A stretch of DNA of 64,000 nucleotides. Source: Pelomyxa schiedti. Its lineage: Eukaryota > Protista > Evosea. A program made the translations under genes and the position numbers. Every line of letters begins with the position of its first letter. Position 1 is the first letter of the stretch. This document shows positions 414 to 19,400 of this stretch, piece after piece. The stretch is taken from the NCBI GenBank assembly GCA_020536535.1, contig JAHLWZ010000417.1:1-64000 (forward strand). Reading direction: 5' to 3'. The notes under the pieces were generated by a model. The model searched no databases and was not told the DNA's origin. It saw only the letters and a list, made by a program, of their open reading frames with translations.

Positions 414-424
414 TCCCACAATTT
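414..424 (+). promoter_or_regulatory. DUSE-like upstream element TCCCACAATTT of hairpin RNA copy 1
   Basis: Starts 64 bp before the G-run at 478; matches the Dictyostelium DUSE consensus WCCCAYAA. Confidence 0.7.
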
Positions 425-477
425 ACATTTTCAGGAAACAATTCTGTTTATCCCGCGCCGGTGAGTGGACAAGTTTT

Positions 478-576
478 GGGGGGGGAGTGAGAGGAGATTG
501 GGCAGATGCACGATAGTGTTGGTTGCGGACGACCCCTGGCTCGTGTTGTGCAGTCCCCCCATTGCCCTCATTCCCC
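478..576 (+). ncRNA. Candidate novel hairpin small RNA, subtype A, copy 1
   Basis: GGGGAGTGAG..CTCATTCCCC terminal stem, TGCACGAT/GTTGTGCA inner stem, GG-ACGA-CC apex; upstream element at fixed spacing. Confidence 0.7.
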
Positions 577-610
577 TGTCCCTAATTTAATTAAATGAAT
601 CACAAAACAC

Positions 611-613
<3 letters not shown>

Positions 614-643
<30 letters not shown>
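614..643. repeat. poly-T tract
   Basis: About 30 consecutive T. Confidence 0.9.
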
Positions 644-749
644 GGCTGCACGCCTACTCCAGAGTCGTGTTGGAATCCCAATGGGTATATTTTTGTTCTG
701 CGTGAGGTGTGACAAAGTGCATGAGGTGTGATAACTTGTAAAATTCCTC

Positions 750-1667
750 CAAAACTGGCCAGGTCATAGGGCGCCTTCACACATTTCACAGGATGTGGCC
801 TTGAGGGGGTTGATAAAGGTGCAACTGGGACAGGGCTTTCCTTTTGGAGCAGCCGTTTGTGTTGTTGGGGGGGGAGGTGGCTTGGGCATTGGTGTGCTGG
901 ATAGACCGGTTCCTGTTTGTGATTGATTGTTATTTGGGAGTGGATGTTCCATGGTTTTGTGGTTACCTTCAAATGCAAGTGCTCTTTTGGTGGTTGCCAC
1001 CAGTGGAACACCACCGAGCTCTTCCATAATTGTGGGATCATCTTCATCAAGCTAGTTGGGATGTGAGTCAAACGTTTGATGAGAAGTCTGTACCTCAGCC
1101 ACTGTGATTGTGCTGGTCTGAGTGACTTTGTTCTCTCCAAGGGTGCCTGTTTTCAGTTCGGTGGTTTTCCGTGTTATGGGATTAACAAATGTGAGCCGTT
1201 GCCTCACTGGCTCGATTTCCTTGTGAGTTTGTCAAAAAAAAGGTTTCTCAAGAGGAAAAGGAACCATCTCCTGAAGAATGAGCAGTCTCAATTCCGATAC
1301 TGGAGTTGTGGAACTCACTTTTATCCTTTTCACTGGACTTGTTATGCATGATGAGAACTTTAAAAAGCTTACTTGGTTGTGAGAGCCAAAGTCTTGAACC
1401 TGAAGCTTTTTTTTTTCTTTTTTCACAAACAAAAAAACTGGGCACGCAGGGAGTACCTTTAGTTACTTCGAGGTACTCATCCACAAAGTTAAACTTCTCA
1501 ACCATACTTTCCTGAGCCGATTGAGAAACACACTCCTCACACAGATCCGGGGTCAGAGTGTAGTCAACTTGGCTTCCATTCCAGTATGATGAGTAGTTTC
1601 TGTTTGTATTGATTCGGAGAACTATCTTGGAGCCTTCTTTCAGGGAGTACCTGGTATGGGATCTCAG
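750..1667 (-). pseudogene. Duplicated 3' end of the USP48-like gene (UBL plus RanBP2-type zinc finger), cut at the assembly gap
   Basis: Diverged copy of ~16438-17418; ends KPCPSCTFINPLKATSCEMCEGAL* (stop at 764). Confidence 0.7.
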
Positions 1668-1909
1668 NNNNNNNNNNNNNNNNNNNNNNNNNNNNNNNNN
1701 NNNNNNNNNNNNNNNNNNNNNNNNNNNNNNNNNNNNNNNNNNNNNNNNNNNNNNNNNNNNNNNNNNNCTGAGATCCCATACCAGGTACTCCCTGAAAGAA
1801 GGCTCCAAGATAGTTCTCCGAATCAATACAAACAGAAACTACTCATCATACTGGAATGGAAGCCAAGTTGACTACACTCTGACCCCGGGTCAGGGTGAGG
1901 AGTGTGTTT
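1526..1909. repeat. Inverted repeat (~130 bp arms) centred on the 100-N gap at 1668-1767
   Basis: 1768-1888 is the reverse complement of ~1547-1667; the ORF track gives the same peptide on both strands. Confidence 0.85.
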
Positions 1910-1916
1910 GTCATCC

Positions 1917-1927
1917 TCCCACAATTT
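1917..1927 (+). promoter_or_regulatory. DUSE-like element of copy 2
   Basis: TCCCACAATTT 64 bp before the G-run at 1981. Confidence 0.7.
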
Positions 1928-1980
1928 AGTTCTGAGGAAGAAAGAACCCTTTTTTTATCGGGAATGATGAGAGACATTTT

Positions 1981-2082
1981 GGGGGGAGGGTGAGAGGAGA
2001 TTGGGCTGATGTATGATCGTGTTGGTTGCGGATATCCCCTGGCTCGTGTTGTGCATTTCCCCATTGCCCTCACTCAAACCCC
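1981..2082 (+). ncRNA. Candidate novel hairpin small RNA, subtype B, copy 2
   Basis: Same core as subtype A, with CTGATGTA, a GG-ATAT-CC apex and GCATTTCCCC; the C>T change in the 5' arm keeps a G-U pair. Confidence 0.7.
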
Positions 2083-2185
2083 AAATCAAATCATTAACTA
2101 AATAATTTTTTTGCACAAAATATGGGTTTATTTTACTGAGATACAGTGTGACTATGTGTGTTGTACAAGGAGCCTCAGAGAGGCT

Positions 2186-5100
2186 TCAAAATTGGGGGGT
2201 GTTGGAAGAAGAAGGAACGAGGGGTGTGGAGGGAGCTGGTGGTGTGAGTTGCTGCTCGTTCATAACACTACTGACAGGGATAGTGCTGGGAGTTGTTGTG
2301 GTTGTGGTTGTGGTTGTTATTGGTGGGTCTGGCTGTACGTCGACCACTGCTTCATCCTCCGCTCTGCCGGCAAAGGAATCCCGGCGTTGCAGGGGTGTTT
2401 CTCTTGGAGAGTACAATCCAAGCTTGGTGTCAAAATACAGTTTCATTAACAGCTGGTAGTGTTTGTGCCATTTACGCTGTGGCCATTTGACAAGAATGCC
2501 GTCGATAACGATGGTAGCAGGGGCACTCAAGGTCAATAAGACCCATGAGTACCACGGAATCTGAGTGACTTTGGCAAGGTTATCTTGTACTGCCACAGAA
2601 ACAACAGAAAATGCTATCTGAGCAATGCACGCACAGATGGAGGCTATAACCCATGAGCGGCATCTGCTTCTTCTTTTTGCCATGTGCCACACAGCAAGGG
2701 AAGGATGAGAATAGGAGGCAGTCAAGGCAACTGCACACCAGACCAATAGCAACATAACCATGTTTTGTGCATAAAGCCTGGAGCATTTGAATTCAAAGGT
2801 GTCGTACCAAATTGTCTCTGAGCTACTGGAACTCGTACTGGCACTGACTTCTGGGAACCCGAACCCGAATAAAGGCTTCCACCCCATCCCCCATAGTGGT
2901 TCGAGAGTGATCAGAAAGAGAGCGACTGCACAGAATATCACTGGCACACCGACAATGACGGCATGTCTAATATTGCGCAGAACAACTTGGGGATTGATGT
3001 AGTTTTTTGGAGACATCTGGGACATAGTCTTCTGCGGAATATGAATAGCCATCAAACTGAAGGCCAACATCGGCCACAGTAGAAGCTCGAGCCACAATAT
3101 TTGGTATCCAGTTAGGGGCTCCGGAACTAGGAGCATGACAGCTAATAGGTCTACAGAAAGACAAATAAGGCAAAGGACAAACATAGCATGCATTGTCTGT
3201 GTTGTGTTACGCAGTATATGCCTTCCTTCTTTAATTAGTGTCAGAAGAACATCAAGCGGTGTATCGCAGTGCATGACAAATGAGCAGGGCAGGCATGTAA
3301 TATCCGCCGATAGTGATCCTGTAGTCCTGAACTGCGTGAATCGCTCTGAGGTTAACCTAGGGAAAGGTGTAGATGCTGCACCGCTTTGCGATAACTTGGG
3401 CATGGTACTGGCGGTTGGTGGACTACTTGAATAATGCCCATCATCAGGTTCGTCTGAAGGAACCCATTGCGAAGGAAGTGGCTGAATTGCTGCAGCAACA
3501 TCAGCTTGGACATATGATGGGGTGCTGTTCATGTTCAAAGCACTCCCGACACAAAGGACTACTTCTCCGTTCTCTTGCAGGATTTTAATCATTTCCCTCT
3601 TGGATTCAGGGGTGCACTCGGCAAAAATGGGCACCAGAAGAGGTACGTTGTCAATGTTTTCGATATGATGTCTGATAGCTCCAATTCCTCGGGGAAGTTT
3701 TGAAGCACCTTCCATAAAAATACTATCATTTGGTCCTGGGTCACGAAGAGATATAATGTAGTTCCATGTTGTATCCAGTCCCATTTGTTGTGCAAACAGA
3801 GTTGATCTGATTTGGTTTTCGTCACTGAAGTACCTAAAACGTACGCCTGCTTTCTGCAATCCCTGTACAAATTGTGGTGTTCCACTTTTAGGTTCTGCAC
3901 GTAACGAAACCATAGCAAGAAAAATTTGCCCTTGTGTCAGCAATTTGTCTTTATCTGTTTGAGTGGTCTCATGTGCTTGCTTGTTACTGTTTTCACTGCT
4001 TGAGCTAGGCGAGTCTTTTATGGCTTTCTTCATTCTGGCTGGCTTTTTGTCATTTGGTGTGATAGATTCGCCATCGGTGTTCTTTTTGGAATGGGCTTTC
4101 TTCTTTTCATGATCACGTTTTTTTTTCTCATGGTCTCCATTCTTCTCATCGACTTGGTGACTGGGATCATTTTGAAATCCAGATCTTTTGTCGTAAGATT
4201 TGGGTTCTGTGCCTTCACTGGGGATTTCGTTGGACTTATGAGAACCACAATAAAACTCTATAGACGAAGGGGATTGCTTTGGTAGAAGAGGAAAAGAGCT
4301 ATTTAAAGATAGTTGGCCAGACTCTAAATTGATTGTCAGGGAGTCGTCTTCACCTGAGGGTGGAACTCCTTTCAAAATCAGCCCCTTGACAAGTCTGGAA
4401 CATTGTGAGAATGCATCATGCACATAGAGTAGAGGAAATTACTGGTAATCTCTAGAGTGCTCATTAAGACAGTCCGGGCCTGAATTGACTTCAGGAAGAG
4501 TAGTCAAGTGCCCTAACATCCATCGTTCCTTTTTTTTGATGAGTTTGTATGCAAACCCAACACAGTAAAATGTCTCGTGTAGTCTCTCAAACTCTGCTAG
4601 GATGGCACTCTTGTTAGCTGCAGTGAGTCGGCATATTTTATTTTGTTCATTCCAGTATTGAGTGCAATGTTGCAGTATGAACGGAACATTGCCCTTCGTG
4701 AAAACTTGGAAGCTATCCTGCCCTGAGTCACCAGCTACAGCATAGACCTGAGAAAACATGTAGTATGGAACTCCTCCATTTTGCATAGGAGCATATGCAT
4801 GAATGTCTTTAACCGGCTTGAAGTGTTCAAGTCCAAAGTTGTCAAGAACTTCATCCTTGAATCCAATTGCTTCGTGTAATCTGCACATGCAAGGCGTGTA
4901 GGGTCGTGAGAAATTAGCAAGCAGGGATACAAGTACTCTCTTCCATCTATTCATATTACCAACACCCGTAACAGGGTGCTTTTTACGGTGCCTGCAATTC
5001 CGTTTGTTTAGCAATAAATTCAAGCCTAGAGCCTTGAGCCATCTCAAATAGACTTGCCAGTTTGGGTCAGTGAATTCCAATTTTCCTTTGGCTGTTGAGT

Positions 5101-6558
5101 CAGAGCTTTGGAGACTCAAACTCATCCCTCCATTGTTAAACAAGTAAACTTGCTCCGGCCTTGACATAGGTTCTACAAGTGTACCGTCCTTATCCATACA
5201 TACAAGAGCCGTCACAGCTCCCAGGGATTGGGCTAGAGGTGAAGTTCGTTGAAGCACGGGATTTGTGTCAAAAAGGAGAGCCCAGAAAAAGTATACCACC
5301 TTTCTCCATGGAACAACTGCCCGTGCACGCTTCCCAACACCTTTCTCATAATCGTGCATGCTAATTCCAAAATCAGGTGCTGCAGGGGCAGATGCAGCTC
5401 CACTTTCTGCTGGTTTGGTTGCACCAGCCAAGTTACTCATGCTTTCCTTCTTTACTAGACCAACACTATTTTGTTGCACATCAACTAATGCAAGGATCCG
5501 AGCATTGCCATAACTCTCAATAAATGTCCAAAGTACGTGAGGAAGTGCAATTGGTAGCAGGGCTAGCATAATATGGGCAGGGCGTGCTAAGACAATCTCA
5601 CTCAAAACGTGACCTTCTTGCAAGGAGTACCGCACAACGTTTATGGCAATAGAAATAGGCAGAGCAATCCACATCACCATCGCAACAAATATGAGCGTGA
5701 ATGCACGATGCTTACCAAGACGCGATCGTGGGCGAATGCTGGGAGCTTGCAGGGCTAATTCAAGCTGCTTACGTGCAGGAGATTCATCTACAATATACTG
5801 TGCAATTGTAAGACGTGGAGTATTACACCTAAGGGGTGTCAACCTCAGTAAGCCATTCTTGCTCAGTAAGTGGAGAATGTGGCTCCGTGTTCTGCCTCTC
5901 TGCAACAGGAGTGGCTTTGGCCGGAAGTGGTGCACCTTGGGGCACCAGAATTGCATCACCAGTAACAAGCAAGTTTTGAGGAACAAAACGCCATACGCCG
6001 TCACGCCGAGTTAAAACCTGTATGATATGGTAGTTAACAACCAGAGATGCGAAGGGAAAAAAAAAAAAAAATTAGTTCAAGCCTCACCTCATGGCCCACT
6101 TCTAGCAAATTGATTCTTTCACAATCGGGGCTCCTCAGATGTGCCCTGGCCCGTCTCACAACCACCATGTGTCTCAATATTCTGTCCTTATAAGCCACTA
6201 GAATATCCAAAGCCAAAAATGCACCCGCGATAGTTGTCTCCATTGCATACTCAGAACAATACCACCAGTACTTCGTATTGGTCTCGCTTTGCTCAGGGGG
6301 TCCCAAATCTTGCTCCGGCAACATGCTACTGATAAAAGCAAGCGCCAGAAGAACGACTGCCACCAAAATCGCCTCAAATCGCAAATTGCGAAGTATGTGA
6401 AGTACGGTTGCTGTCAAACAATGCCGGTTTCGAATGTCACGCTCCCTCTCGTCCAACGCCCTCTCTAACTCCTCGATCAGTGCCCTGTTGTCCCTCGATT
6501 TATAGGTAGATCTAGATCCCAGTATCCCCACCCCCGCCGACGTAGTGGGCTCCGTCAT
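2186..6558 (-). CDS. TMEM94: Transmembrane protein 94 (P-type ATPase-like), multi-exon
   Basis: Family motifs GVRFRYFS, AQQMGLDTTWNYIISL, KLPRGIGAIRHHIENIDNVPLLV, ENGEVVLCVGSALN, LYFDTKLGLYSP and CMDKDGTL; multiple TM helices. Confidence 0.9.
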
Positions 6559-6748
6559 CTCTCTTATTGGTTTTTTTATTGTTTAATTATGTACCGATAC
6601 GAAGCGCTTTTTGCCGGCTTCGTTCGTTTTTTTTTTGGTTTTTCACATCGTCTTCGTCAAGATCTGTTATCGGCGAACAAAACGAACAAAAGGAGATCTC
6701 CGGAATTTCACCAGGGTATCGGTCCGGTCGGATCTTTCAGTCACAATC

Positions 6749-7545
6749 TCAGGCGTATCTTCTGACTTGGTCGAGGGTGTTTCGTGGCTTGTGTGTATTG
6801 ACCGTGGCGTCGTGGGTCGGGTAGCCCAGTGCGATAATCACGTCTATTTTGGTGGACGCCGGCAATTTGAGGGCCGTTTTGATGCCGGCTTCTGAGAACC
6901 AACCTATCCAACAGGTACCAAGTCCCAACTCAGTAGCCTGAAGTGTAAGGTGGTCACAAGCTATTCCAATATCTTGCAGTGTTTGTTTGTCATGATCCAT
7001 CAAAGGGGAGTGAGTTATACCTATGAGGTTGTACTGAACACTTCGCAGCCATCCACCAAGGCGAGCAGCGTAGTTGGATACTTCGGTAACGCATACAATA
7101 ATAACCGGTGCAGTTTTGGCGAATTTCCCAGTGACTCCATGTACACCGGAGAAGGCCGCATCGGCAACGGCATCCTTTTTCGTGGCTTTGTATTGGTTAC
7201 GGTACACTTAAACAAATCAACTGGGAGTAGTTGCCGGTATTAATAACTATACGTTCCGCTACACATATATAGAGAAATGGAGAAATACTTTCAAAGGCTG
7301 CGTATCAACAACTATGAAGGACCACGGCTGTGAGTTACACGCAGAAGGAGCCACTCTGGCAGCATCCAAACACTATAACATCTTAAGTAATGGTACACAC
7401 CCAGTGACACTGAGAAAAAGAAGCGAAAAACCTTGTCAATTAACTCACGTGGTACCGGGGTGCTTTTGTACTCACGACAACTTCTCCTTGTCAAAATCAA
7501 CTGCTTGAATGCCGATTCGTTTTCATCACTAGCAACACTCACCAT
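6749..7545 (-). CDS. Nitroreductase-family FMN oxidoreductase, intron-containing
   Basis: RRSCREY, AARVAPSACNSQPWSF (across exons), DIGIACDHLTLQATELGLGTCWIGWF, IALGYP. Confidence 0.9.
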
Positions 7546-7589
7546 CTCGCGTGGTTAAAAACACAACAAAACAAAAATATTATTGGGTT

Positions 7590-7681
7590 GAGTGAGGGCA
7601 ATGGGGGGACTGCACAACACGAGCCAGGGGTCGTCCGCAACCAACACGATCGTGCATCTGCCCAATCGCCTCTCACTCCCC
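7590..7681 (-). ncRNA. Candidate hairpin small RNA, subtype A, copy 3
   Basis: Reverse complement of the subtype A core, with one change (GAGGCGATT) in an unpaired region. Confidence 0.7.
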
Positions 7682-7734
7682 GAAAACCTTTGGGATCTCG
7701 CCGAAACAAAAAGGATATTTTTTTCGGAAAAAGA

Positions 7735-7745
7735 AAATTGTGGGA
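7735..7745 (-). promoter_or_regulatory. DUSE-like element of copy 3
   Basis: AAATTGTGGGA on +, 64 bp from the G-run start at 7681. Confidence 0.7.
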
Positions 7746-7853
7746 TCACGAAAGTGTTTTGAGATGGTCGTGAAGAGGCGTGTGTCCAGACGCCTCTTCA
7801 CGACCTCCGCACAGTCACATTATTTTGATCTCCACAAACAAAATGGATAGATT

Positions 7854-10800
7854 TTACTCCTCAATGTTGAGCTTCTTGACCTTGGGAGAGGGACCAGCTG
7901 GTGCTGCCTGCTCAGCCACGAGTTTCGAGAGATCTTCCTCTCCAACACGTTTGTTGGTGCCTGTGTTTGAATGAAGGGGCAGAGGAGGTATAAGGAACCC
8001 ATCCTTATCTCTTGTGAGTGTGATAGGAGTGGCGCTTCTAGGAGCACCGCAACTTCGCTGCGAGGGTTGCAGGACAGCACCCGTGGTTGGGGTGTTGCTG
8101 TGGTTTCTCTTCCTGGGAACAGTGTGAGAACGCGTTCTTGGTTTCTTCTGTGTTGGAGGGACTGCTTCGGGAAAGACTAAAGTTGAGCCCTGAAGGTGAG
8201 GAGTTCCATAGTTGGGGGATCCCAGGTCTCGAGATATCTTGCTTAATAGACAAGCTGCTTTTCGCCTAAATTCCACCACACCTGCTTGATCAGGGTGCCT
8301 ATCAAGTACTGCTTGGCCACCATCATGGAAAAACTCGTACAGCTTGGGCACAATGGTTTCATAGGAGCAGATATCCACAAGCCAACCAAAAAGGGATGGC
8401 AACCCTGTTGCGGCCTCGTCCATGCTGAAATACTTGCTTGACAAACTCAGATCGACGAACACAGCATCAGATAGCATCTGTACAGTCAAGAAGTTATCAA
8501 CATACTCAGCAATCGTATCTGCGAGATAGTCGTCATCATCACCGTTGTAAATGGTGCTCAACAGATAAAGTGTTACAGGCCACACGTTTCTTGCTTTTAG
8601 AAGGGCCAGCTCCAGGTCAAGACCAGGGAGTGAAAGCAATGCATTAGCCACCGGAGTGATGACACCTTGCAATCCCAGAATATGCTTATTTAACTTCCTA
8701 TATCCAATTGCAAAGCAGTCTGAACCCCCTTTTTTTTGGACTGGCCGTAACTTCAAGAGAGCTTCAAAAAAGATGACGGGGTACTACTGGATCAGGTTCC
8801 AGGTGAGAAGGTTGTTCTGGTCCAACCACAGGAACGCATCCCCACTGCAACCCTTCCTTAGCAACTCCCAAAGTACCACGTTCATCTTGAACCCAGGGTC
8901 GCCGGTTTGTGGATTCCCTGCTATCTGTTCTCTCACAAACGGGAGTAAGGCATCAGCCACCTTGAAAGACTTTGGTGGCACCAAGTAATGGCAAATCGAG
9001 TCTTCCTTCATTGATGCAAGAACATCCCTTGGTACTCCAATGAAGTCCTCTGACACCTTGTGAAAGTGGTGCAGAACTACTGGTGTCAACGAAGAAATAA
9101 GCAACTGTGATAAAATTGCACTTATCTCAGCCTTGAATTCCGGTTGTCGGATAAGCAAATTGAAGACGGCGTCGTTGTTGCGTGCGCAAGCGGAGTTGAG
9201 GAGTCTCTGAACTGTGTCACCAGGCAGCGGCGCGGTGTGCTTTCGCCAACGCACAAGTATTTCCTCGAAATAAAGAGCGGCCTCAGGGGTGTTGTGCCTC
9301 GCGATGTTGCATAAGAGGTTCGGGAGATTTTCTTGGAGTTCATCATCATCATCCCCTTGGGCGACCTCCCAGCTGAGAATCTGTTTCAACGTGCCCCACA
9401 TTCCAGCAAGCGCCGCAGACAACGCGATCGTGGACTTCACGAACGGGGGCCATTTGTGCGCTTCTAACTCCACTGGGGTTTGGATTTGCGGTGAGTCCCA
9501 GCGCCCTGGGTCGGCGGCGACGATGTTTCGGATCGCCTTGCAAGAAGTGCGAAAGTTTTTCTCTGTCGTGCAAGCTGATTTCAGCACCGGTGTGCTGAAG
9601 TTCCTCAGGACTTGGACCGGCATCCTTGGCACTGCATTCAAAAGCAGTTGGAACACTTCTGTGTGTCCGCCCGCTGCTGCGCTGCAGAAGGCACTCGTCT
9701 TGACTGTATGGGTGACCTCGTCGTAAACTAAGCGCTGGGCTGCTGACGAGTGCGCCAATATGCCCTCAATCAACGGCACAGCTCCTGTGAAACACGCGAT
9801 TTCAAGCAGCTCCCCTATTTGCTCGGTATCCTCGACTTGAGTGCACACAATAAGCGCTGTGACCAGCTGCCTCGTTCGTAGTTCAAGCTGCAATACTTCC
9901 TCTTGGTTCTTTGCTTTGAGCATTGACTGACTCGCAACGGAAATTCCCATGCAAATAGCCACGCGGAGGTTCTTGTGACTCATATTCTGGACTCCAATCC
10001 AATCACGGCAACTCGCGGAAGGCAACGCAGGTGTGATAGAGACATCCCTCTGCCACGCATCAAGAAATTCGCTCTGACCATGGGCAATGGCGTAAAGAAA
10101 CGCACCTGTGGAAAGTTGTCAGTGACACAACCAAGGGCAGCTAAATGCATAGAAACCTGGTGTGGCGCTAGGTAAGCAGTGAAACCTGGATTGGTACATT
10201 GCAAGCAAACACTTGACTGGCCAGTTTTGGGGCTCCATGTGTGGCGCACACATTGATCATGTTGGAGATGCTGCCGACTCGACTTTGGAGCCACAGTATA
10301 GCCTTGCCCAGCCCAAAGGGATAGAATACTTCTGCCATCTTTACTACGAACATGAGCTGATCCTTTTTGTAGTGCATCAGGTGCTCAACTTCGCTTGTGG
10401 TCCTCCATTGTGGAGAATTCCTTTGCCGCTTGCAGTGGCAGAATGCCTCAGTAACATCTGTGAGCCTCTGTTTTCTATCTTGCTTCCCGAAAAGCGTTCG
10501 GTATACAATTCGCCACATCGTATCAATTTGAAAGAGAGAGTATGACCAAAATCCGCAGTTCCTTCCCCCTTACGACCAGCTCTCTTCTGATTTGTGTTTA
10601 TTGTGAATCCGAGTTGCTTTTGCAAACTACACACCCATCATTATCAGTCTGGACCACTGTTGTCAGCACGGCCAGTGATTCCGCGGCACCCACAACAGAA
10701 CCTGGTGAGACCGCTATTCCAACGGTTGTGCTTCTGTTTATTTTATTGCGTTCGTATTTGTTTCTTAGTTATGTTTGCCTTTCGACGTGTTCATTCATGT

Positions 10801-10891
10801 TAATTGGCTTGTGTATTTTATCAATTGCGGCAATTGAACCATACGCAGTCCCCTGCGTCGGCGTCTCAACGCCGCCGTCGTTTGGGTTCAT
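7854..10891 (-). pseudogene. Degenerate ankyrin-repeat protein, paralogue A, with one in-frame TAG at 8784-8786
   Basis: Collinear with the 12577-15686 gene (AFCSAAAGGHTEVFQLLL); reads CAG TAG TAC where the paralogue has CAG TAC; the frame continues after the stop. Confidence 0.7.
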
Positions 10892-11112
10892 AGTTTGTGG
10901 TTCCACACTACGCACGTCCGGCAAAGCGTGTCTTTGTTGGAATGGAAAAGGAAGGAACGGCAACCAAATTTAGCCTTCTCACTCTTTCTGATCGGTTAGC
11001 AGGTGCTGCCAACTCTCCCAACCCTACCTGGGACCGCTGAACAACCGAACAACCGCGACAATGGTTGTGTCCTTCCCTATTTGCACCAAACACCACTCTG
11101 ACCACCCCCCAG

Positions 11113-11123
11113 TCCCACAATTT
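11113..11123 (+). promoter_or_regulatory. DUSE-like element of copy 4
   Basis: TCCCACAATTT 64 bp before the G-run at 11177. Confidence 0.7.
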
Positions 11124-11176
11124 ACATTTTCAGGAAACAATTCTGTTTTATCCCGCCCCGGGGAGCCGAAAATTTT

Positions 11177-11276
11177 GGGGGGGGAGTGAGAGGAGATTGG
11201 GCAGATGCACGATCGTGTTGGTTGCGGACGACCCCTGGCTCGTGTTGTGCAGTCCCCCCATTGCCCTCATTCCCCC
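11177..11276 (+). ncRNA. Candidate hairpin small RNA, subtype A, copy 4
   Basis: Subtype A consensus core with terminal stem. Confidence 0.7.
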
Positions 11277-11692
11277 TCCATAATTAAAACCATAAAAATA
11301 ATTTTTTTTTTTCTCTCCTATTTTAAAATACTTTTTTGAACAGTTTCACACCGAGGTAAATAGGAACACCAATAGTGACTGCAGCCACACCACCAACGAC
11401 TGTGGCAGTCCCAAAACTGGCCAGGTCGTAGGGCACCATCACACATTTCACAGGATGTGGCCTTGAGGGGATTGATAAAGGTGCAATGGGAGTGGATGAT
11501 GTTCCATGGTTTTGTGGGTACCTTCAAAAGCAAGTGCTCTTTTGGTGGTTGAGACCAGTGGACCCCTCGTTCCTTCTTCTTCCAACACCCCCCAATTTTG
11601 AAGCCTCTCTGAGCCTCCTTGTACAACACACATTGTCACATTGTATCTCAGTGAAATAAACCAAAAAAATTATTTAGTTAATGATTTGATTT

Positions 11693-11792
11693 GGGGTTTG
11701 AGTGAGGGCAATGGGGAAATGCACAACACGAGCCAGGGGATATCCGCAACCAACACGATCGTACATCAGCCCAATCTCCTCTCACCCTCCCC
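11693..11792 (-). ncRNA. Candidate hairpin small RNA, subtype B, copy 5
   Basis: Reverse complement of the subtype B core, intact within decayed flanking DNA. Confidence 0.7.
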
Positions 11793-11847
11793 AGATTCAT
11801 ATTCGCATCATTCCCGATAAAAAAAGGGTAATTTTTTCCGCGGAAGT

Positions 11848-11858
11848 AAATTGTGGGA
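11848..11858 (-). promoter_or_regulatory. DUSE-like element of copy 5
   Basis: AAATTGTGGGA, 66 bp from the G-run and 73 bp from the GTGAG core, as in copies 1, 2 and 4. Confidence 0.7.
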
Positions 11859-12206
11859 CCGAAATGGTGTACTTGTGTTCGATGAGGTTGATCTAGGTGG
11901 TGGAATTGGCGAGTTTCGCAAGAGCTTCCCCGTTGATTGAAATGTCCTTGGCACGGCATTCAAAAGTAGCTGGAACACCTCTGTGTGTCCACTCGCTGCT
12001 GCACTCGCCTTGCGTGTATGGGTGGCTTCATCATGATGGGGTTGGGCTCCTGGCGAGAGTGTAGTACTCTCTAGTAGTACTGTTTCAATCAACACATTCC
12101 GGGGTCAGTGCGTAGGCAATTTTGCTTCCATTCCCGTAGTTTCTGTTTGTGTTGATTCGGAGGCCTGTGGTTAAACCCAAAACAAAAATATTATTATTAT
12201 TGGGTC

Positions 12207-12299
12207 GAGTGAGGGCAATGGGGAAATGCACCACACGAGCCAGGGGATATCCGCAACCAACACGATCGTACATCAGCCCAATCTCCTCTCACCCTCCCC
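12207..12299 (-). ncRNA. Candidate hairpin small RNA, subtype B, copy 6
   Basis: Subtype B core with one T>G change (GTGGTGCA). Confidence 0.7.
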
Positions 12300-12352
12300 A
12301 GATTTATCTTCATCATTCCCGACAAAAAAAGGGTCTTTTTTTCGGGGGAAGT

Positions 12353-12363
12353 AAATTGTGGGA
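12353..12363 (-). promoter_or_regulatory. DUSE-like element of copy 6
   Basis: AAATTGTGGGA, 64 bp from the G-run start at 12299. Confidence 0.7.
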
Positions 12364-12576
12364 TGGAAATGGTGTACCCCGCAGTCAGCCTAGTCGCGTG
12401 TGAGTTGTGTGTGGTTCCCTTTTCGGTGGTGTTGGTCTCTGTGGGACCTTCGAGGTGGTGTGGGTTCTCTTGGTAGCAAATTGTGATGCCGATCCAAATT
12501 TGGAGGCTGGCCATTTCTTTATCATTCCAAACTAAGACACGCTTTGCCGGACGTGCGTAGTGTGGAACCACCAGCC

Positions 12577-15500
12577 ATGAACCCAAACGACGGCGGCGTT
12601 GAGACGCCGACGCAGGGGACTGCGTATGTTAAACTGCAATTGAAAAAAATACGAGCAATTTAAATGAATGCAGTGCATTCAAGAAGCCAACAAACACAAA
12701 CACAATAAAAAAACAGAAGCACGGAGGCTAGTTCTTGTGGAAGTGGCACGGGAAACTCACTGGTTGTTGTTGGTGAGGCTGAGGCGACTACAGTATCGAC
12801 AAAAGTTCAGGCTGATAATGGGTGTGTTTGACTTGAATCACATAGAAGAAAGTAACTCAAATCAGAATCGCTGGTTGTGAGGGGAAAGAACAGCAGAGCA
12901 AACGGGCTTTTGGTCATACTCTCTTTCAAATTGATACGATGTGGCGAATTGTATACAGAACGCTTTTCGGGAAGCAAGACAGAAAACGGAAGCTCACAGA
13001 CATTCCAGAGGCATTCTGTGACTGCAAGAGGAAAAGGCAATCTCTCCAATGGAGGACAACATGGGCAGTTGCACACCTGATGCACTTTAAAAGTGAGCAG
13101 CTCATGTTCGTTGTGAAGATGGCAGAAGTGTTCTATCCTTTTAGCCTCGGCAAGGCGATCAAGTGGCTCCAAAGTCGAGTGGGGAGTATCTCCAACATGA
13201 TCAACGTGTGTGCCACACATGGGGCCCCGAACGTGGCCATTGGGTGCTTGCTGCCAATGTATCAATCCAGGTTTCACTGTCTTCCGAGTGTCACACCAGG
13301 TTTTTCTGCATTTTTTCTTCGTACTTGTTATTTTATGACTGACAAGTAAGTTTCCACAGGTGCATTTCTTTACGCCATTGCCCATGGACAGTCTGAGTTC
13401 CTTGATGCGTGGCAGAGGGAGGTCTCGGTCCTGCCTGCAGATGGCCTTGAGGACATGGGCGTAAAGAAGAATACGAATCACAAGAACCTCCGTGTCGCTA
13501 TTTGCATGGGAATTTCTATTGCGAGTCAATCAATGCTCGAGGCAAAAAACAAAGAAGAAGAAGAAGAAGTATCACAGCTGGAAGTGCGAACGACGCAGCT
13601 GGTCTCCACTCTTATGGTATGCACCCCGGTCAATGAGGACATCCAGCAAGTTGGAGAGTTGCTTGAAATTGCGAGTTTCACAGGAGCTTCCCCGTTGATT
13701 GAAACAATACTAGCACTCCCGCAAGGAGCCCAATTCCTTCACGATGAAGCCACCCATGCACTCAAGGCGAGTGCTTTCTGCAGTGCAGCAGCGGGTGGAC
13801 ACACAGAGGTGTTCCAACTGCTTTTGAATGCAGTGCCAAGGACGTCAACGTATTCCCTGACGAACTTCAGCACGTCGGTGCTAACATCAGCGTGCACTAC
13901 CGAGAAGAGCTTCGGTCGAACTTGCAAGGCGATCCTACGCATCGTAGCCGCTGATCCCTCACGCTGGGACAAAGCACAAATCCCAGAGGAGTTCTTGACG
14001 CGCAAATGGGCTCCTTTCGTGAAGTCCACGGTCGCGTCGGCTGCATCCCGTGCTGGGATGTGGGGCACAGTGAAAAAGATTCTCTGCCCCGAGTTCAGCG
14101 AAACCGATGAGGGCATCCAATCGAATCTCCCTGTCCTCTTGCACAACATTGCCAGGCGCAACGCCGATGATGTGGCTACACCTATTTTCGAGGAAATACT
14201 TGTACGTTGGCGAAAGCGCAACACGGCACCGCTGCCCAAAGACACTCTTTATGGGCTTCTCAACGCAGCATGCACTCGCAATAACGACGCCGTCTTCAAT
14301 TTGCTTGTCGCGCAGCCCGAGATCAGTGCCGACATCAACAGAGCCTTGTCAGAATTGCTTGTTTCCGCGTTGTCCCCAAACGTTCTGCACCACTTTCACA
14401 AGCTGTCAGAGGACTTAATTGGGATCCCCAAGGATGTTATTGCATCGATTGCAATGAAGGAAGGCTCGATTAGCCACTACTTGGTGCCACCAAAGACTTT
14501 CAAGGTGGCTGATGCTTTGCTGCCATTCATCAGGGAACAGGCCAAGGGCAATCCACAAACCGGCGACCCTGGGTTCAAGATGAACGTGGTGCTTTGGGAG
14601 TTGGTAAGGAAGGGTTGCAGTGGAGATGCGTTCCTGTGGTTGGACCAGAACAACCTCCTCACCTGGGACATGATCCAGTACCCCGTCATCTTCTTTCAAG
14701 CCCTCCTGAAGTTGCGGCCAGTGCCTAAAAAAGGGGGTTCAGATTGCTTTACCATTGGATACCGAAAGCTGAATAAACATATTCTAGGATTGCAAGGTGT
14801 CATTACTCCGGTAGCAAACTCACTGCTTTCACTCCCTGGCCTTGACTTGGAGATGGCACTTCTCAAAGCTCAAAATGTGTGGCCTGTCACGCTTTATCTG
14901 TTGAGCACCATTGACAGCGGTGACGATGACGACTACTATCTCGCTGATACGATTGCCGAGTATGTTGACAACTTCTTGACTGTACAGATGCTATCTGATG
15001 CTGTGTTCGTCGACCTGAGTTTGTCAGGAAAGTATTTCAGCATGGACGAGGTCACGACAGGGTTGCCATCCCTTTTTGACTGGCTTGTGGAAATCTGCTC
15101 CTATGAAACCATTGTGCCCAAGTTGTATGAGTTTTTCCATGACGGCGGTGGGGCAGTTCTTGCCAAACACCCCGATCGAGCAGGTGTTAAGGACTTCCAG
15201 CGAAAAGCGGCTTGTCTATTGGGAAGGATCTCTCGAGACCTTGGATCGCCTGGCTATGGAGTTCCTCACCTTCAGGGGGCTACTTTAGTCTTTCCTGGCG
15301 TTGTTAGTTGTCCAGCACAAAGGAAGCCCAAAAGGCGCTATCACGTAGCTCCCAGGAAAAGGAACCATAGCAATGCACCGGAAACAGGTGTTATACTTCC
15401 ACCCTCACAACGTGGTGGTGGTGGTGGTGGTGCTCCCAGCAGTGCCTCTGTTTCCACTCCTACCACACTCACAAGGGATAAGGATGGTTTCCTTATACCC

Positions 15501-15686
15501 CCTCTGCCCTCTGTCTTTCCCAAAAACCAGCAGTCCTCCAAAGAACCACCACCGGCAGCACTTTGTTCAAACACAGGCACCAACAAAAGTGGTGGAGAAA
15601 ATGATGATGACGACTTGGTAACTGAGACTCATGATGTGGCACCAACAGGCCCCTCTCCCAAAGTCCAGAGGCTCAACAATCCCTAA
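12577..15686 (+). CDS. Degenerate ankyrin-repeat protein, paralogue B (~950-1000 aa, 4 predicted exons)
   Basis: ATG at 12577 (MNPNDGG); in-frame GT-AG introns at ~12624-12716, ~12822-12865 and ~13290-13359; ankyrin-like AFLYAIAHGQSEFL and AFCSAAAGGHTEVFQLLL; terminal ORF of 743 aa. Confidence 0.8.
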
Positions 15687-15850
15687 AGGGCAAAAGAGAT
15701 GGTGTCGGGGGCCCGACAAAAATCAAAAATATGAAAATCAGACCTTTTTCACGAGTGAACTTGTGACCAAGTAGTCAGTCGGTCGTAGTGGCTTTGCAAT
15801 TCTAACACACATACGCCGAACGAGAACAGAAGTTGGTGGTTTGTCTTCCA

Positions 15851-15861
15851 TCCCACAATTT
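15851..15861 (+). promoter_or_regulatory. DUSE-like element of copy 7
   Basis: TCCCACAATTT 65 bp before the G-run at 15916. Confidence 0.7.
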
Positions 15862-15915
15862 AGTTCTGAGGAAGAAAGAACCCTTTTTTTATCGGGAATG
15901 ATGAAGAGACATTTT

Positions 15916-16017
15916 GGGGGGAGGGTGAGAGGAGATTGGGCTGATGTACGATCGTGTTGGTTGCGGATATCCCCTGGCTCGTGTTGTGCATTTCCCCATT
16001 GCCCTCACTCAAACCCC
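15916..16017 (+). ncRNA. Candidate hairpin small RNA, subtype B, copy 7
   Basis: Subtype B consensus core. Confidence 0.7.
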
Positions 16018-16452
16018 AAATCAATCAAACAATAAATAAAAATGCATAAATAATTTTTTTTGCTCCAATTCCTCCTCGATTTGGTATCGTGAACGCCATT
16101 GAGTTGGACGGAATGAATATATTAAGAGACATTGGTTATATATTTCTCTTTGAGTTGGATAGCACAATTTTTCTGTTAGGGGAAAATAGATTTTTCTCGT
16201 GAACAGCAGGGTTCTGGGCCCCCAGCAGTGCCCCTTGGGCAATGCTCGACAACACTCAGCAACACTACCACACACCCACGGGCAAGCAGGCCCTGTTGGT
16301 GAGATATCGAAAAAAAAAATTAAATTTCTCAGTCTTTTTTGACGGTAAAATTGTGTTATCCAACTCAAAGAGATATTATGTGGCAAACTTGGGAGTTCGT
16401 TGCTGGCCCCCTGGCATACATACAACTTTTTAAAATTCCAAAACTGGCCAGG

Positions 16453-19400
16453 TCATAGGGCACCATCGCACATTTCACAGGATGTGGCCTTGAGGGGGTT
16501 GATAAAGGTGCAACTGGGACAGGGCTTTCCTTTTGGGGCAGCCGTTTGTGTTGTTGGGGGAGGTGGCTTGGGCATTGGTGTGCTGGATAGACCGGTTCCT
16601 ATTTGTTTTTGTTAATTGGTGGTGAAAGCCCCCAGGTTGGTGGGTACCTTCAAATGCAAGTGCTCTCTTGGTGGTAGATGCCGGCGGAGCACCGCCGAGC
16701 TCTTCCATAATTGTGGGATCGTCTTCATCAAGCTGGTTGGAATGTGAGTCAATCCGGTTGATTGATGAGAAATCCGTACCTCAGCCACTGTGATTGTGCT
16801 GGTCTGAGAGACTTTGTTCTCTCCAAGGGTGCCTGTTTTCAGTTCGGTGGTTTTCCGTGTTACGGGATTAACAAATGTGAGCCGTTGCCTCACTGGCTCG
16901 ATTTCCTTGTGAGTTTGTCAAAAAAAAAAAGGTTTCTCAAGAGGAAAAGGAAACCATCTCCTGAAGAATGAGCAGTCTCAATTCCGATACTGGAGTTGTG
17001 GAACTCACTTTTATCCTTTTCACTGGACTTTGTTATGGCATGATGAGAACTTTAAAAAGCTTACTTGGTTGTGAGAGCCAAAGTCTTGAACCTGAAGCTT
17101 TTTTTTTTTTTTTTTCTTTTTTCACAAACAAACAAACAAACAAACAAACAAACAAACAAACAAACAAACAAACAAACAAACAAAAAAACTGGGCACATAG
17201 GGAGTACCTTTAGTTACTTCGAGGTACTCATCCACAAAGTTAAACTTCTCAGCCATACTTTCCTGAGCAGATTGAGAAACACACTCCTCACACAGATCCG
17301 GGGTCAGTGCGTAGTCAACTTGGCTTCCATTCCAGTATGATGAGTAGTTTCTGTTTGTATTGATTCGGAGAACTATCTTGGAGCCTTCTTTCAGGGAGTA
17401 CCTGGTATGGGATCTCAGTTTAGGAACTGCAGTTCATGTCTTCACTCACACCTCTCAACCAAAATAGAGAAAAGTTTCTCAGGGAGAATGCGAAACGGGG
17501 AAGATTCTGCATTACAACTAACAAACTGCATCGTGAAGACCTTTTCAATGACGTTGATGCCCACTTTATTGTGCTGGCAAACGAATTTACTATTGTCTAT
17601 AGGACCGGGCCGGGAGGCACTAAATTCGTTCATGATAGGAGGACATGGGAAGGTAGGTCACCTCATCGAGTCACGGGAAGAAGTGTATGAAGACCAGATC
17701 TGATACCATGCAGAAGAAACCAAGCAGTATCTTGGGTTATTTTCACATCGTGGGAGGTGTAGTGATGGGATTCTTACTGTGTTCGTTCTTGGATATCATA
17801 TGGATACCGTATGAAAGAATTTCCAATGTCAAAGTACTCGTTATTCTTTGTTTTGAAAAGTCAGAAAGGAGCTAGACAGAGGAAAACTCGCACCAGGTGG
17901 TTTGTAATGCGTACAGAATCGTTCCTCTTTCGTTCATAGTCTTTCCGACAGTCACGGCACTCAGTATCTTGGTGGTATAGAGTTTGATCTGGGCGAATTG
18001 TACCCTCACACTGTGTCAAAAAATACTCCCAAATCTTGTTTATGGCATTACTACATCAATTAAATTCTGGAAGTATTAACTTCGTCCGAAATTAGTTTGG
18101 CATTATCAAGGGGGAAAAGTTTTTTGTGCTTGCAAAGAATATCTTCAGTAAGCTGCACTACAGGAATCCTAGTGGAAGCGGATGTTTCCTTAAAACCTTC
18201 TCAAGGTAAGTGCAGAGACTAACGTCGAACGTCTTACGCTCTATAAATTTCCTGCTGATATGATACCCTTGTGAAACATACTGCGACTCAAGTCTGTGTT
18301 GCATGTCACTCTTCATCTCTTTCATCTGCTTCAAAGAATCTCTTCTGGCAATCCAGGTCTGTTAGGAATAAGCACAGTGGAGAATATATATGTATGGTAC
18401 TTCGAGGCACAGTAGACAGCAGTGCTCATGGGACAATGCAGGACCTCCACCATAAGTAGCGTGGAACATCTCCCAAACAGGCTAGCACTTCTTTAAGGGA
18501 AATACTAGAGGAAGGCAAGAGTACCACACTGATTCTCTTCATGTGTGTGGTTGCCCCTTTCTCAAGTTTGGCATTGCCATGCTCACAGACCAGAGAGGCA
18601 TTATCAATTGGAGGGATTGCTGCCTGCCCTCCTGACATCCAATTTCTTAGCCATCCAACTTCAATCCAGTGGTATTCCGTTTCAGACTGAGATGGTATTT
18701 TCTATACAGAACGTAAATGAGCTTTCGATGTCACTTGCTATACGTCATGTATTGTGGAGTATAGTTGAAGGTATGATCTTGCTGACTCCTGGTGATCCCT
18801 CTCTTCTATGGTGAGCTCATAGTATTTTTTTTCAAGCTCCACATTCTCTGCAGTAATCTGCTCTATCACTTTATGCTATTAGATTCGATTGGAAACCAAC
18901 AAAGAAACATGACAAAACAAAAGAAGTTCGTGGAGTTGTGTCAGGAATAGTATGTGACTTATTTTGGTAAAACAGCATATATGGTGTTTCGTCTGTTCGA
19001 TAACTATGTTAGCAAATAACTTTTTTTTTTGCTTCATCACTCACTTGTTTCTGTAAGAGGAGGTGGAAATTCAGGACACTGAGTTATTCGGAGATCATCA
19101 CATTTCCACCACATGTCAGTAGACCTAAAAACAAAATAAAATAAAACCCTAAAAACAAGAGGAAAATTGTACCTGTCCAGTACATAGGCAATATAGTGCC
19201 CGCCTTCAGCAAAAATTAAACGGTGTTCCAAAAAAAATTACGTCACTACCATGAATAGAAACACCAATGTGAGAAAGGACTGCAAATAACTCATAGCGGT
19301 GTGGATGTGTTGCATCTTTTTGATGGAGAGCACTGTCACTTAAAAATTCTTTCATTGACAACTTGGTTTCAATTTTTATAGAGTCCATTAACTGAGTAGT

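Follow-up and report, generated by a model that had tools for sequence, protein, structure and literature searches.

The genome of the anaerobic amoeba Pelomyxa schiedti contains at least 23 genes for a folded RNA of about 100 bases, and 13 of these 23 genes lie within ~3.1 kb of a member of one ankyrin-repeat gene family, specific to P. schiedti, in a target that amounts to 0.26% of the genome. The RNA genes are very probably of snRNA type, with an external promoter, made up of a DUSE and a T-rich element, from which Pol III transcribes them; the predicted product begins with G and consists of a rod of ~95-110 nt, an A-rich tail and an oligo-U end. Their adjacency to the ankyrin family suggests matched RNA-protein pairs.

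Gene copies and promoters

The window (the whole 64,000-nt stretch of P. schiedti DNA that we analyzed) contains seven copies found by a pattern search (Table 1), where 0.2 would be expected and none of 100 shuffles reached the count. Their coordinates and strands agree with the first-pass annotation, which had described a family of seven; the copies are real, but they are only the window's share of a genome total whose value of 23, from a genome-wide search, is a lower bound. The exact sequence TCCCACAATTT occurs 261 times, which is not a count of genes because most of the exact sites sampled are chance occurrences.

Table 1. Positions of the RNA genes (starts predicted), ankyrin-like genes and other features in the window.
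Feature	Position	Strand	Remarks
DUSE/USE-type upstream box, copy 1	414-424	+	same box precedes U2, U4, U5, U6 and SRP genes
RNA gene copy 1, subtype A, start 478	478-617	+	hairpin to ~580, A-rich tail, T-run
Near-invariant motif within copy 1	493-503 and 557-566	+	
Fold-back around assembly gap 1668-1767	1522-1913	.	outside every RNA gene
Box (1917-1927) and RNA gene copy 2, subtype B, start 1981	1917-2108	+	
Box (7735-7745) and RNA gene copy 3, subtype A body, start 7681	7575-7745	-	170 nt downstream of ankyrin gene A
Ankyrin-like gene, paralogue A	7854-10518	-	single in-frame stop (8784-8786); shares 76% identity with paralogue B
Box and RNA gene copy 4, subtype A, start 11177	11113-11304	+	660 nt upstream of gene A and divergent from it
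Box and RNA gene copy 5, subtype B, start 11792	11667-11858	-	
Ankyrin-like gene fragment, 54 codons	11940-12101	-	
Box and RNA gene copy 6, subtype B, start 12299	12186-12363	-	640 nt upstream of gene B and divergent from it
Ankyrin-like gene, paralogue B (Pelo_5093)	12939-15686	+	895 aa; has a single short intron
Box and RNA gene copy 7, subtype B, start 15916	15851-16056	+	230 nt downstream of gene B

The upstream DNA of copy 1 (1-625), where the contig begins, shows 86% similarity to 10692-11312, which lies upstream of ankyrin gene A. Copy 2 is a mosaic, with a promoter resembling that of copy 7 and a tail resembling that of copy 5, and the inner hairpin of copy 3 is 100% identical to that of copy 4, whereas its promoter and tail are nearer to those of the B-type copy 6. 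The assembly gap at 1668-1767, which no RNA copy or promoter spans, is flanked by 146-nt inverted copies that end in an exact fold-back, unlike a paralogous stretch (17273-17418) that runs on without one. The sequence may therefore not be continuous across the gap, and copies 1 and 2 may not be true neighbors.

The box upstream of the RNA genes is the one used by the U2, U4, U5, U6 and SRP genes of P. schiedti; it lies 58-64 nt before the starts of the U2, U5, U6 and SRP genes and also precedes U4. Among the 17 family members with sequence to hand, 14 have this DUSE ~60 nt upstream. The predicted start is a G located 60-65 nt downstream of the box, a spacing equal to that of U6 and SRP. By a matrix that splits Pol II (U2, U5) from Pol III (U6, SRP) promoters, correctly in 54 of 54 leave-one-out tests, 12-13 of 14 family promoters score as Pol III. 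A T-run follows 107-141 nt after the predicted start, so the primary RNA would bear an A-rich tail of 10-45 nt beyond the hairpin; the length of ~95-100 nt proposed in the first-pass annotation holds for the hairpin but falls short of the predicted primary RNA by this tail. The promoter spacers of independent A copies are only 48-60% identical, and the inner hairpin is 96-100% identical within a subtype. We take this retention of the hairpin while the spacer diverged as a probable sign of selection.

RNA structure and known RNA classes

Near-invariance across subtypes is limited to a 4x3 internal loop (GGAGAUUGG / CCAUUGCC), and the only near-invariant sequence in the whole family is GGAGATTGG...CCATTGCC, with one change in copy 3. 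The longer conserved core recognized earlier, including GTGAG/CTCAY and TGYACGAT/GTTGTGCA, is confirmed within subtypes A and B but mostly does not extend to the rest of the family. Elsewhere the stems differ by up to 50% between subtypes while pairing is kept. In an alignment of related sequences that had been fitted to the model, 96.6% of cells are paired (52-55% in slid controls) and 12 pairs have double changes, which 0 of 500 shuffles match. All 12 distinct inner sequences fold into a scaffold-closed hairpin, at between-group identities down to 40-55%, with single inner hairpins individually significant in some subtypes only. Folding and alignment covered the members other than six longer ones (C253, C596:13923), in which a G-C to A-U change beside the loop, read by eye, fixes the loop register. 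For three copies the hairpin has z-scores of -3.5, -2.0 and -4.2 on the plus strand, and -0.9, +1.3 and -2.2 on the other strand. The strand bias of G-U pairs claimed previously is present in A and B but fails for subtypes D-G, whose strand is accordingly assigned from the promoter.

The apex carries a bulged motif that is semi-conserved across subtypes, and the arms are variable, with compensatory changes in both of their strands. These properties make it improbable that the genes are Pol III precursors of miRNA-like small RNAs, in which the invariant basal loop would signal processing and the inner hairpin would supply its 20-25 nt arms as variable guides, even though the arms have a suitable length, miRNAs occur in Amoebozoa (PMC11014262) and Pol III milRNA precursors are reported from Neurospora (PMC3547838). 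Nor does subtype A have a long complement elsewhere in the genome or in neighboring genes. Between the two options first offered, a stable RNP RNA fits better than a small-RNA precursor, because two structural motifs are conserved and not an arm sequence.

Compensatory rather than neutral change also tells against mobile-element ends or relics, in the form of inverted cassette termini or SINE-like copies. Outward-pointing inverted copies do bracket the A and B cassettes in the window, the RNAs have an A-rich tail, and a different promoter precedes one stand-alone copy, which begins at the start site. However, the external promoter is held at exact spacing despite its diverged spacer, arrangements elsewhere are tandem and convergent, and we found no transposase or nuclease domain in the neighboring ankyrin protein, whose C-terminal half is poorly modelled. 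The first-pass annotation had named target-site duplications with pairing-neutral decay as the mark of transposon ends; three stand-alone copies lack any such duplication of ≥7 nt, and this explanation is largely refuted.

No Rfam 15 family matches at its gathering threshold or with a significant E-value (none in the window, none for copy 1 at E ≤ 10, and only sub-threshold noise at six other loci). When metagenomes, viruses and prokaryote genomes were scanned for the pattern, they gave 0, 10, 0 and 1 matches, none with a correctly placed promoter or a significant model score. The first-pass interpretation is partly supported: promoter class, covariation and the lack of matches in Rfam or in these scans favor a lineage-specific class of structured RNA, predicted to be independently transcribed.

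The hallmarks of tRNA, SRP, Y, Class I and snRNAs said to be missing were indeed absent among the features tested. The family has no Sm site and its promoter is Pol III-type, unlike Sm snRNAs and SL RNAs; genes for U2, U4, U5 and U6 exist elsewhere in the genome. We found no cloverleaf or, one loose B box aside, A/B boxes of a tRNA or tRNA-derived SINE, no target-site duplications at three stand-alone copies, and no C box of a box C/D snoRNA (CUGA is present in some subtypes only). Many members have ACA or AUA near the 3' end, but 20-45 nt from the loop instead of the 14-16 nt required in H/ACA snoRNAs, and the loop strands are 4 and 3 nt. SRP helices 6 and 8, the GNRA loop and the SRP54 site are lacking in the family RNA, which has no similarity to the six separate canonical SRP genes of the genome. 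An SRP-helix-8-like look of the reverse strand was set aside, since the genome has true SRP genes and the opposite strand is the one favored by promoter and folding. A resemblance of the 5' end of subtypes A and B to human 7SK was also dropped, since other subtypes do not conserve this end.

A general Pol III RNP RNA of the Y or vault kind, perhaps associated with TEP1, would match the family in size, terminal stem, oligo-U end and an external promoter like that of Y RNA genes. The G-U/A-U step with its UUG strand recalls the Ro helix, a TEP1-like gene (the single TROVE locus, with DUF5920 and DUF4062) is present, snRNA genes in this genome are likewise dispersed (18-33 copies), and 10 of the 23 RNA genes have no ankyrin paralogue nearby; proximity to the others would then reflect only shared duplication history and local gene conversion. 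We nevertheless consider this unlikely. The Y RNA motif, GNCGAAN0-1G or GGUCCGA on the 5' strand (as defined in PMC4201824), is absent in 17 of 17 members, with the invariant strand departing from it at two positions (A for C, U for A). Tested vault RNA features are missing too, with A/B boxes absent from all 17 members bar one B box with 1 mismatch. No Ro60 gene was found, in a search that gives a lower bound for this intron-rich genome, and the ankyrin linkage outlasts repositioning and deep divergence.

Linkage to an ankyrin-repeat gene family

The linkage to ankyrin genes is the most informative feature of the family; it was absent from the first-pass annotation, as were the wider family and the true invariant motif. 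A confirmed RNA gene lies beside 7 of the 8 long paralogues, with two weak matches at the eighth. The linkage still holds where protein identity is 45%, and it occurs in three orientations. At one locus found through the promoter box alone (C157), a related hairpin adjoins a piece of a paralogue with 30% identity. No RNA genes were detected at fragmented paralogues, which are also the most divergent, and gene A, interrupted by a stop, retains two perfect RNAs. The RNA subtype tracks the neighboring paralogue: the 24 U2 genes are on average 95% identical, whereas this family divides into subtypes matching their neighbors. To our knowledge, eukaryotes rarely place a trans-acting RNA gene beside a protein gene, yet this family keeps its adjacency through deep divergence, which points to functional coupling.

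The protein of paralogue B has a basic CxC...HxxH N-terminus, a degenerate ankyrin solenoid and a disordered tail. The full-length structure model is poor (pLDDT 44), and the N-terminal, putatively metal-binding stretch is unmodelled (pLDDT <50). A contig search for ankyrin paralogue proteins returned nothing. The RNAs show no complementarity to neighboring mRNAs or to snRNAs/SRP beyond that of shuffles.

We tentatively propose that the Pol III RNA binds and regulates a cognate protein, acting as a protein ligand rather than guiding by base pairing. The common protein-binding site would be the invariant 4x3 internal loop, the bulged apex, at a distance of roughly one to two helical turns, could be a second contact, and the variable stems would supply subtype specificity. 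The likeliest partner would be the ankyrin-repeat protein encoded next door, which the RNA might gate or sequester; gene and RNAs would then form a cognate cassette, duplicating and diverging jointly. The fullest version, in which each paralogue moves with its own Pol III RNA subtype that binds and turns off (or arms) that protein, like an RNA antitoxin of bacteria or a sensor gated by RNA, is doubtful, and we found no eukaryotic cassette of this type described in the literature. Local duplication and gene conversion can by themselves yield both linkage and matching subtypes. Ankyrin repeats usually bind proteins, which counts against an RNA partner.

Coupling could instead be positional. Plasmodium RUF6 (GC-rich ncRNA, 135 nt) has 15 Pol III genes adjoining var genes, with internal A/B boxes and highly homologous members (PMC6974570, PMC9670795), and here too Pol III transcription might open or insulate chromatin at the ankyrin genes, in cis or trans, with the loop binding a general nuclear factor and not the neighbor's product. 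The RNA genes bracket paralogues on both sides and are often divergent from the promoter end. A role of this kind seems rather unlikely, however: the orientation and side of the RNA genes vary, and a positional role would not call for the divergence of their bodies between subtypes.

At the least, the family gives Amoebozoa a second class of predicted DUSE-driven small RNAs, this one from outside the dictyostelids, and it forms an independent parallel to RUF6/var. Binding of the RNA to its neighbor, if real, would make the subtype series directly usable for testing RNA-protein co-evolution in vitro, and recognition of RNA by an ankyrin-repeat protein would be unusual. General impact is limited by an organism that is hard to manipulate and a family that looks species- or genus-limited.

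Relation to known systems

In bacterial type III toxin-antitoxin systems, a structured RNA is encoded beside a protein, in repeated copies and with cognate specificity. The logic proposed here is shared by analogy only; nothing indicates toxin or nuclease activity in the ankyrin protein, and the P. schiedti RNAs have separate Pol III genes instead of processed repeats. With Y RNA/Ro60 and vault RNA/TEP1 the family shares a Pol III RNA of 80-140 nt with a terminal stem, a conserved helix that binds protein (putatively so in P. schiedti) and a variable remainder; it differs in lacking the Y motifs, A/B boxes, a large open loop and a detectable Ro60 gene.

The closest analogues appear to be the dictyostelid Class I RNAs and Plasmodium RUF6/var. 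Class I RNAs are likewise Amoebozoan, encoded by many genes with a DUSE ~60 nt upstream and probably transcribed by Pol III, and they have a 5'-3' stem, a short conserved motif beside it and a variable interior (PMC7919456). They are known only from dictyostelids and are 42-65 nt long; their stem spans 6 bp and their 11-nt motif is unpaired (PMC7919456). Neither this length nor this motif is seen in P. schiedti, where the RNA is a rod of 95-110 nt, its motif is two-stranded and differs in sequence, its inner hairpin covaries, and its genes are linked to one protein family. RUF6 shares no sequence with the P. schiedti RNA (Rfam is blank), and its internal A/B boxes are replaced here by an external promoter. 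What the two have in common, as a likeness in manner of working only, is a lineage-specific, multi-copy RNA, by our inference also Pol III-transcribed in P. schiedti, beside one lineage-specific multigene family, which in P. schiedti encodes an ankyrin protein of intracellular type and is accompanied by RNA bodies whose subtypes track their neighbors.

A family of hairpin RNA genes in P. schiedti

The window opens a contig of the P. schiedti assembly (52,367,397 bases, 5337 contigs). The first-pass annotation placed seven hairpin RNA genes in it, and all seven were recovered at those positions, with 0.2 expected by chance. The genome was described as 52.4 Mb in 5337 scaffolds, with 7.4 introns per gene (PMC8887013). 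Folding three copies on the strand that it had predicted gave z-scores of -2.0 to -4.2. Aligned with their flanks, the copies share a layout in which a diverged spacer separates an 11-nt box from the G-run at the start; a conserved body, an A-rich tail and a terminal T-run follow. The assembly gap between copies 1 and 2 overlaps no RNA gene or promoter; the join there is suspect because its two sides are exact fold-backs of each other, unlike the paralogous stretch up to 17418, which runs on normally. This affects only the relative placement of these two copies. The P-type ATPase-like and nitroreductase genes between copies 2 and 3 identify the surroundings as ordinary host DNA, not a provirus.

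Coordinates of features discussed in the text (single numbers are predicted starts)
Feature	Sequence	Position	Strand
RNA copy 1 (subtype A)	window	478	+
Assembly gap	window	1668-1767	
RNA copy 2 (subtype B)	window	1981	+
P-type ATPase-like gene	window	2186-6558	-
Nitroreductase gene	window	6749-7207	-
RNA copy 3 (subtype A)	window	7681	-
Ankyrin-like paralogue, gene A	window	7854-10518	-
Extra in-frame TAG in gene A	window	8784-8786	-
RNA copy 4 (subtype A)	window	11177	+
RNA copy 5 (subtype B)	window	11792	-
RNA copy 6 (subtype B)	window	12299	-
Gene B (Pelo_5093)	window	12939-15686	+
RNA copy 7 (subtype B)	window	15916	+
Exact box	C202	30048-30058	-
Fragmented ankyrin paralogue	C202	28827-29948	
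241-nt copy of window 11172-11412	C867 (L072:1367-1607)	57.6-57.8 kb	
TEP1-like gene	C807	26066-29309	+
U6/U5 stem variant (example)	C819	14908-15025	

A covariance model built from eight A/B copies found seven further genes (contigs C867, C990, C2327, C596 and C306), a pattern search one more, and a second model with a longer-gap pattern another six (C253 and C596); the family has at least 23 genes. C157 carries a tentative 24th member, a hairpin that has the box and 5' motif but an altered 3' motif and receives no score from the covariance model. The exact box on C202, immediately 5' of a fragmented ankyrin paralogue, could mark an additional RNA gene.

Near-invariance is confined to GGAGAUUGG and CCAUUGCC, whose pairing encloses a 4x3 loop (AGAU over UUG) with G-C and U-A as its closing pairs. 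In longer members A-U replaces G-C, on both sides, at the pair two steps further up (read by eye), which fixes the register of the loop. Between groups, inner hairpins share 40-55% identity, and all nevertheless close on this scaffold. Among ten related members, in an alignment fitted to the model, 96.6% of cells are paired and 12 pairs show double changes (slid partners, 52-55%; 0 of 500 shuffles). Most subtypes have a bulged apex, GYGG-loop-CCCCYGR, in keeping with the GG-NNNN-CC apex proposed earlier. Members of one subtype have inner hairpins that are 96-100% identical, including members whose promoter spacers are only 48-60% alike. Since the equally dispersed U2 genes remain 95% identical, the subtype split is a special feature of this family.

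Promoter and predicted transcript

The box (consensus CCCAYAA) lies 58-64 nt ahead of the U2, U5, U6 and SRP genes of P. schiedti, and at about the same distance from U4. It is the DUSE of dictyostelids, which there serves Pol II and Pol III alike (PMC7919456). A matrix built on the DNA downstream of the box told Pol II (U2, U5) from Pol III (U6, SRP) promoters in 54 of 54 leave-one-out cases; trained on U2 and U6 alone, it still separated the classes, bar one SRP gene. It scored 12-13 of 14 family promoters as Pol III, the clear exception being a stand-alone copy (C867:57834) behind a different promoter. At this locus a 241-nt copy of window 11172-11412 starts exactly at the start site and is preceded by an unrelated promoter of Pol II-like type, an apparent promoter capture. 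The predicted first G is 60-65 nt past the box, and the first T-run follows 107-141 nt later; Pol III transcription, start and end are predictions from sequence. One box is thus common to both classes, and the 50 nt after it, which split them perfectly in cross-validation, should be useful for annotating further RNA genes of this genome.

Linkage to ankyrin-type genes

In the window the RNA copies bracket two inverted paralogues, A-type RNAs around gene A and B-type around gene B. Genome-wide, 13 of 23 RNA genes have a paralogue no more than about 3.1 kb away (12 within 1 kb), against a target that makes up 0.26% of the genome; in this count some gene ends on other contigs are extrapolated and the copies, not being independent, represent about seven gene loci. 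Of the eight long paralogues, seven are accompanied by a confirmed RNA gene and one by two weak matches; model and pattern searches detected none at the six fragmentary loci. RNA genes can be divergent upstream of the paralogue, or downstream of it in tandem or convergent orientation, and so have been repositioned yet retained. Copy 7681 is nearer to B-type 12299 in promoter and tail, and its inner hairpin is identical to that of the A copy across gene A; either local conversion or selection for a match with the neighbour could explain this mosaic. That the copies are a mobile element is highly improbable, as no target duplications of 7 nt or more were detected at three stand-alone ones.

The ankyrin-type family has about 14 loci, and the window gene is intron-poor. 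No significant relatives outside P. schiedti were found among 1.8 billion representatives; giant-virus ankyrins gave weak, non-significant matches. A structure model of the first 445 residues (pLDDT 72) predicts an ankyrin-type solenoid (best Z 10.8, top rows all ankyrins), in which the basic CxC...HxxH N-terminus stays unmodelled. Paralogue A has one in-frame TAG more than paralogue B, and is annotated by NCBI as several short proteins. Over its first 125 residues (L075:483-857) the C867 paralogue shares 89% identity with gene B, against 63-68% elsewhere, which suggests conversion of its N-terminal region.

Possible roles and known RNAs

Two conserved structural motifs, freely covarying stems and the lack of complementarity to neighbouring mRNAs, snRNAs or SRP suit a protein ligand more than a guide. 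The hairpin RNA would bind the ankyrin-type protein encoded next door, the simplest partner to account jointly for linkage and subtype tracking, though we put this at slightly under even. Against it, ten RNA genes stand alone with no paralogue nearby, and gene A has intact RNAs despite an in-frame stop of its own. Processing of the hairpin into small RNAs seems quite unlikely. A general Y- or vault-like RNP RNA with a historical linkage to ankyrin genes is unlikely. The only TROVE locus found in the genome is a TEP1-like gene (RGG-rich N-terminus, TROVE, DUF5920, DUF4062), and no Ro60 gene was found.

Rfam gave no match, and A/B boxes, Y motif, Sm site, C box and Class I motif are absent from the 17 members examined, apart from a 1-mismatch B box in one of them. 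SRP, U2, U4, U5 and U6 have normal genes elsewhere, and searches of viral, metagenomic and prokaryotic collections turned up no homologue. The family belongs to none of the tested families; it is a real family of small-RNA genes, predicted to be transcribed by Pol III, for which no earlier description exists as far as Rfam and paper searches reach. Separately, SRP RNA genes (C455, C794, C817, C834, C850, C714) run about 234 nt from the promoter-predicted start, and their RNA is one long end-to-end stem, apparently without an Alu domain. U6 and U5 each comprise several variants that differ in the 5' or 3' stem; dispersed copies number 19-21 (U6), 18 (U5) and about 30 (U2).

A part like that of RUF6, the Plasmodium Pol III RNA beside var genes, in expression of the ankyrin-type family is unlikely in our estimate. 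In the way it works, the family comes nearest to RUF6 for genomic coupling and to the dictyostelid Class I RNAs for gene anatomy.
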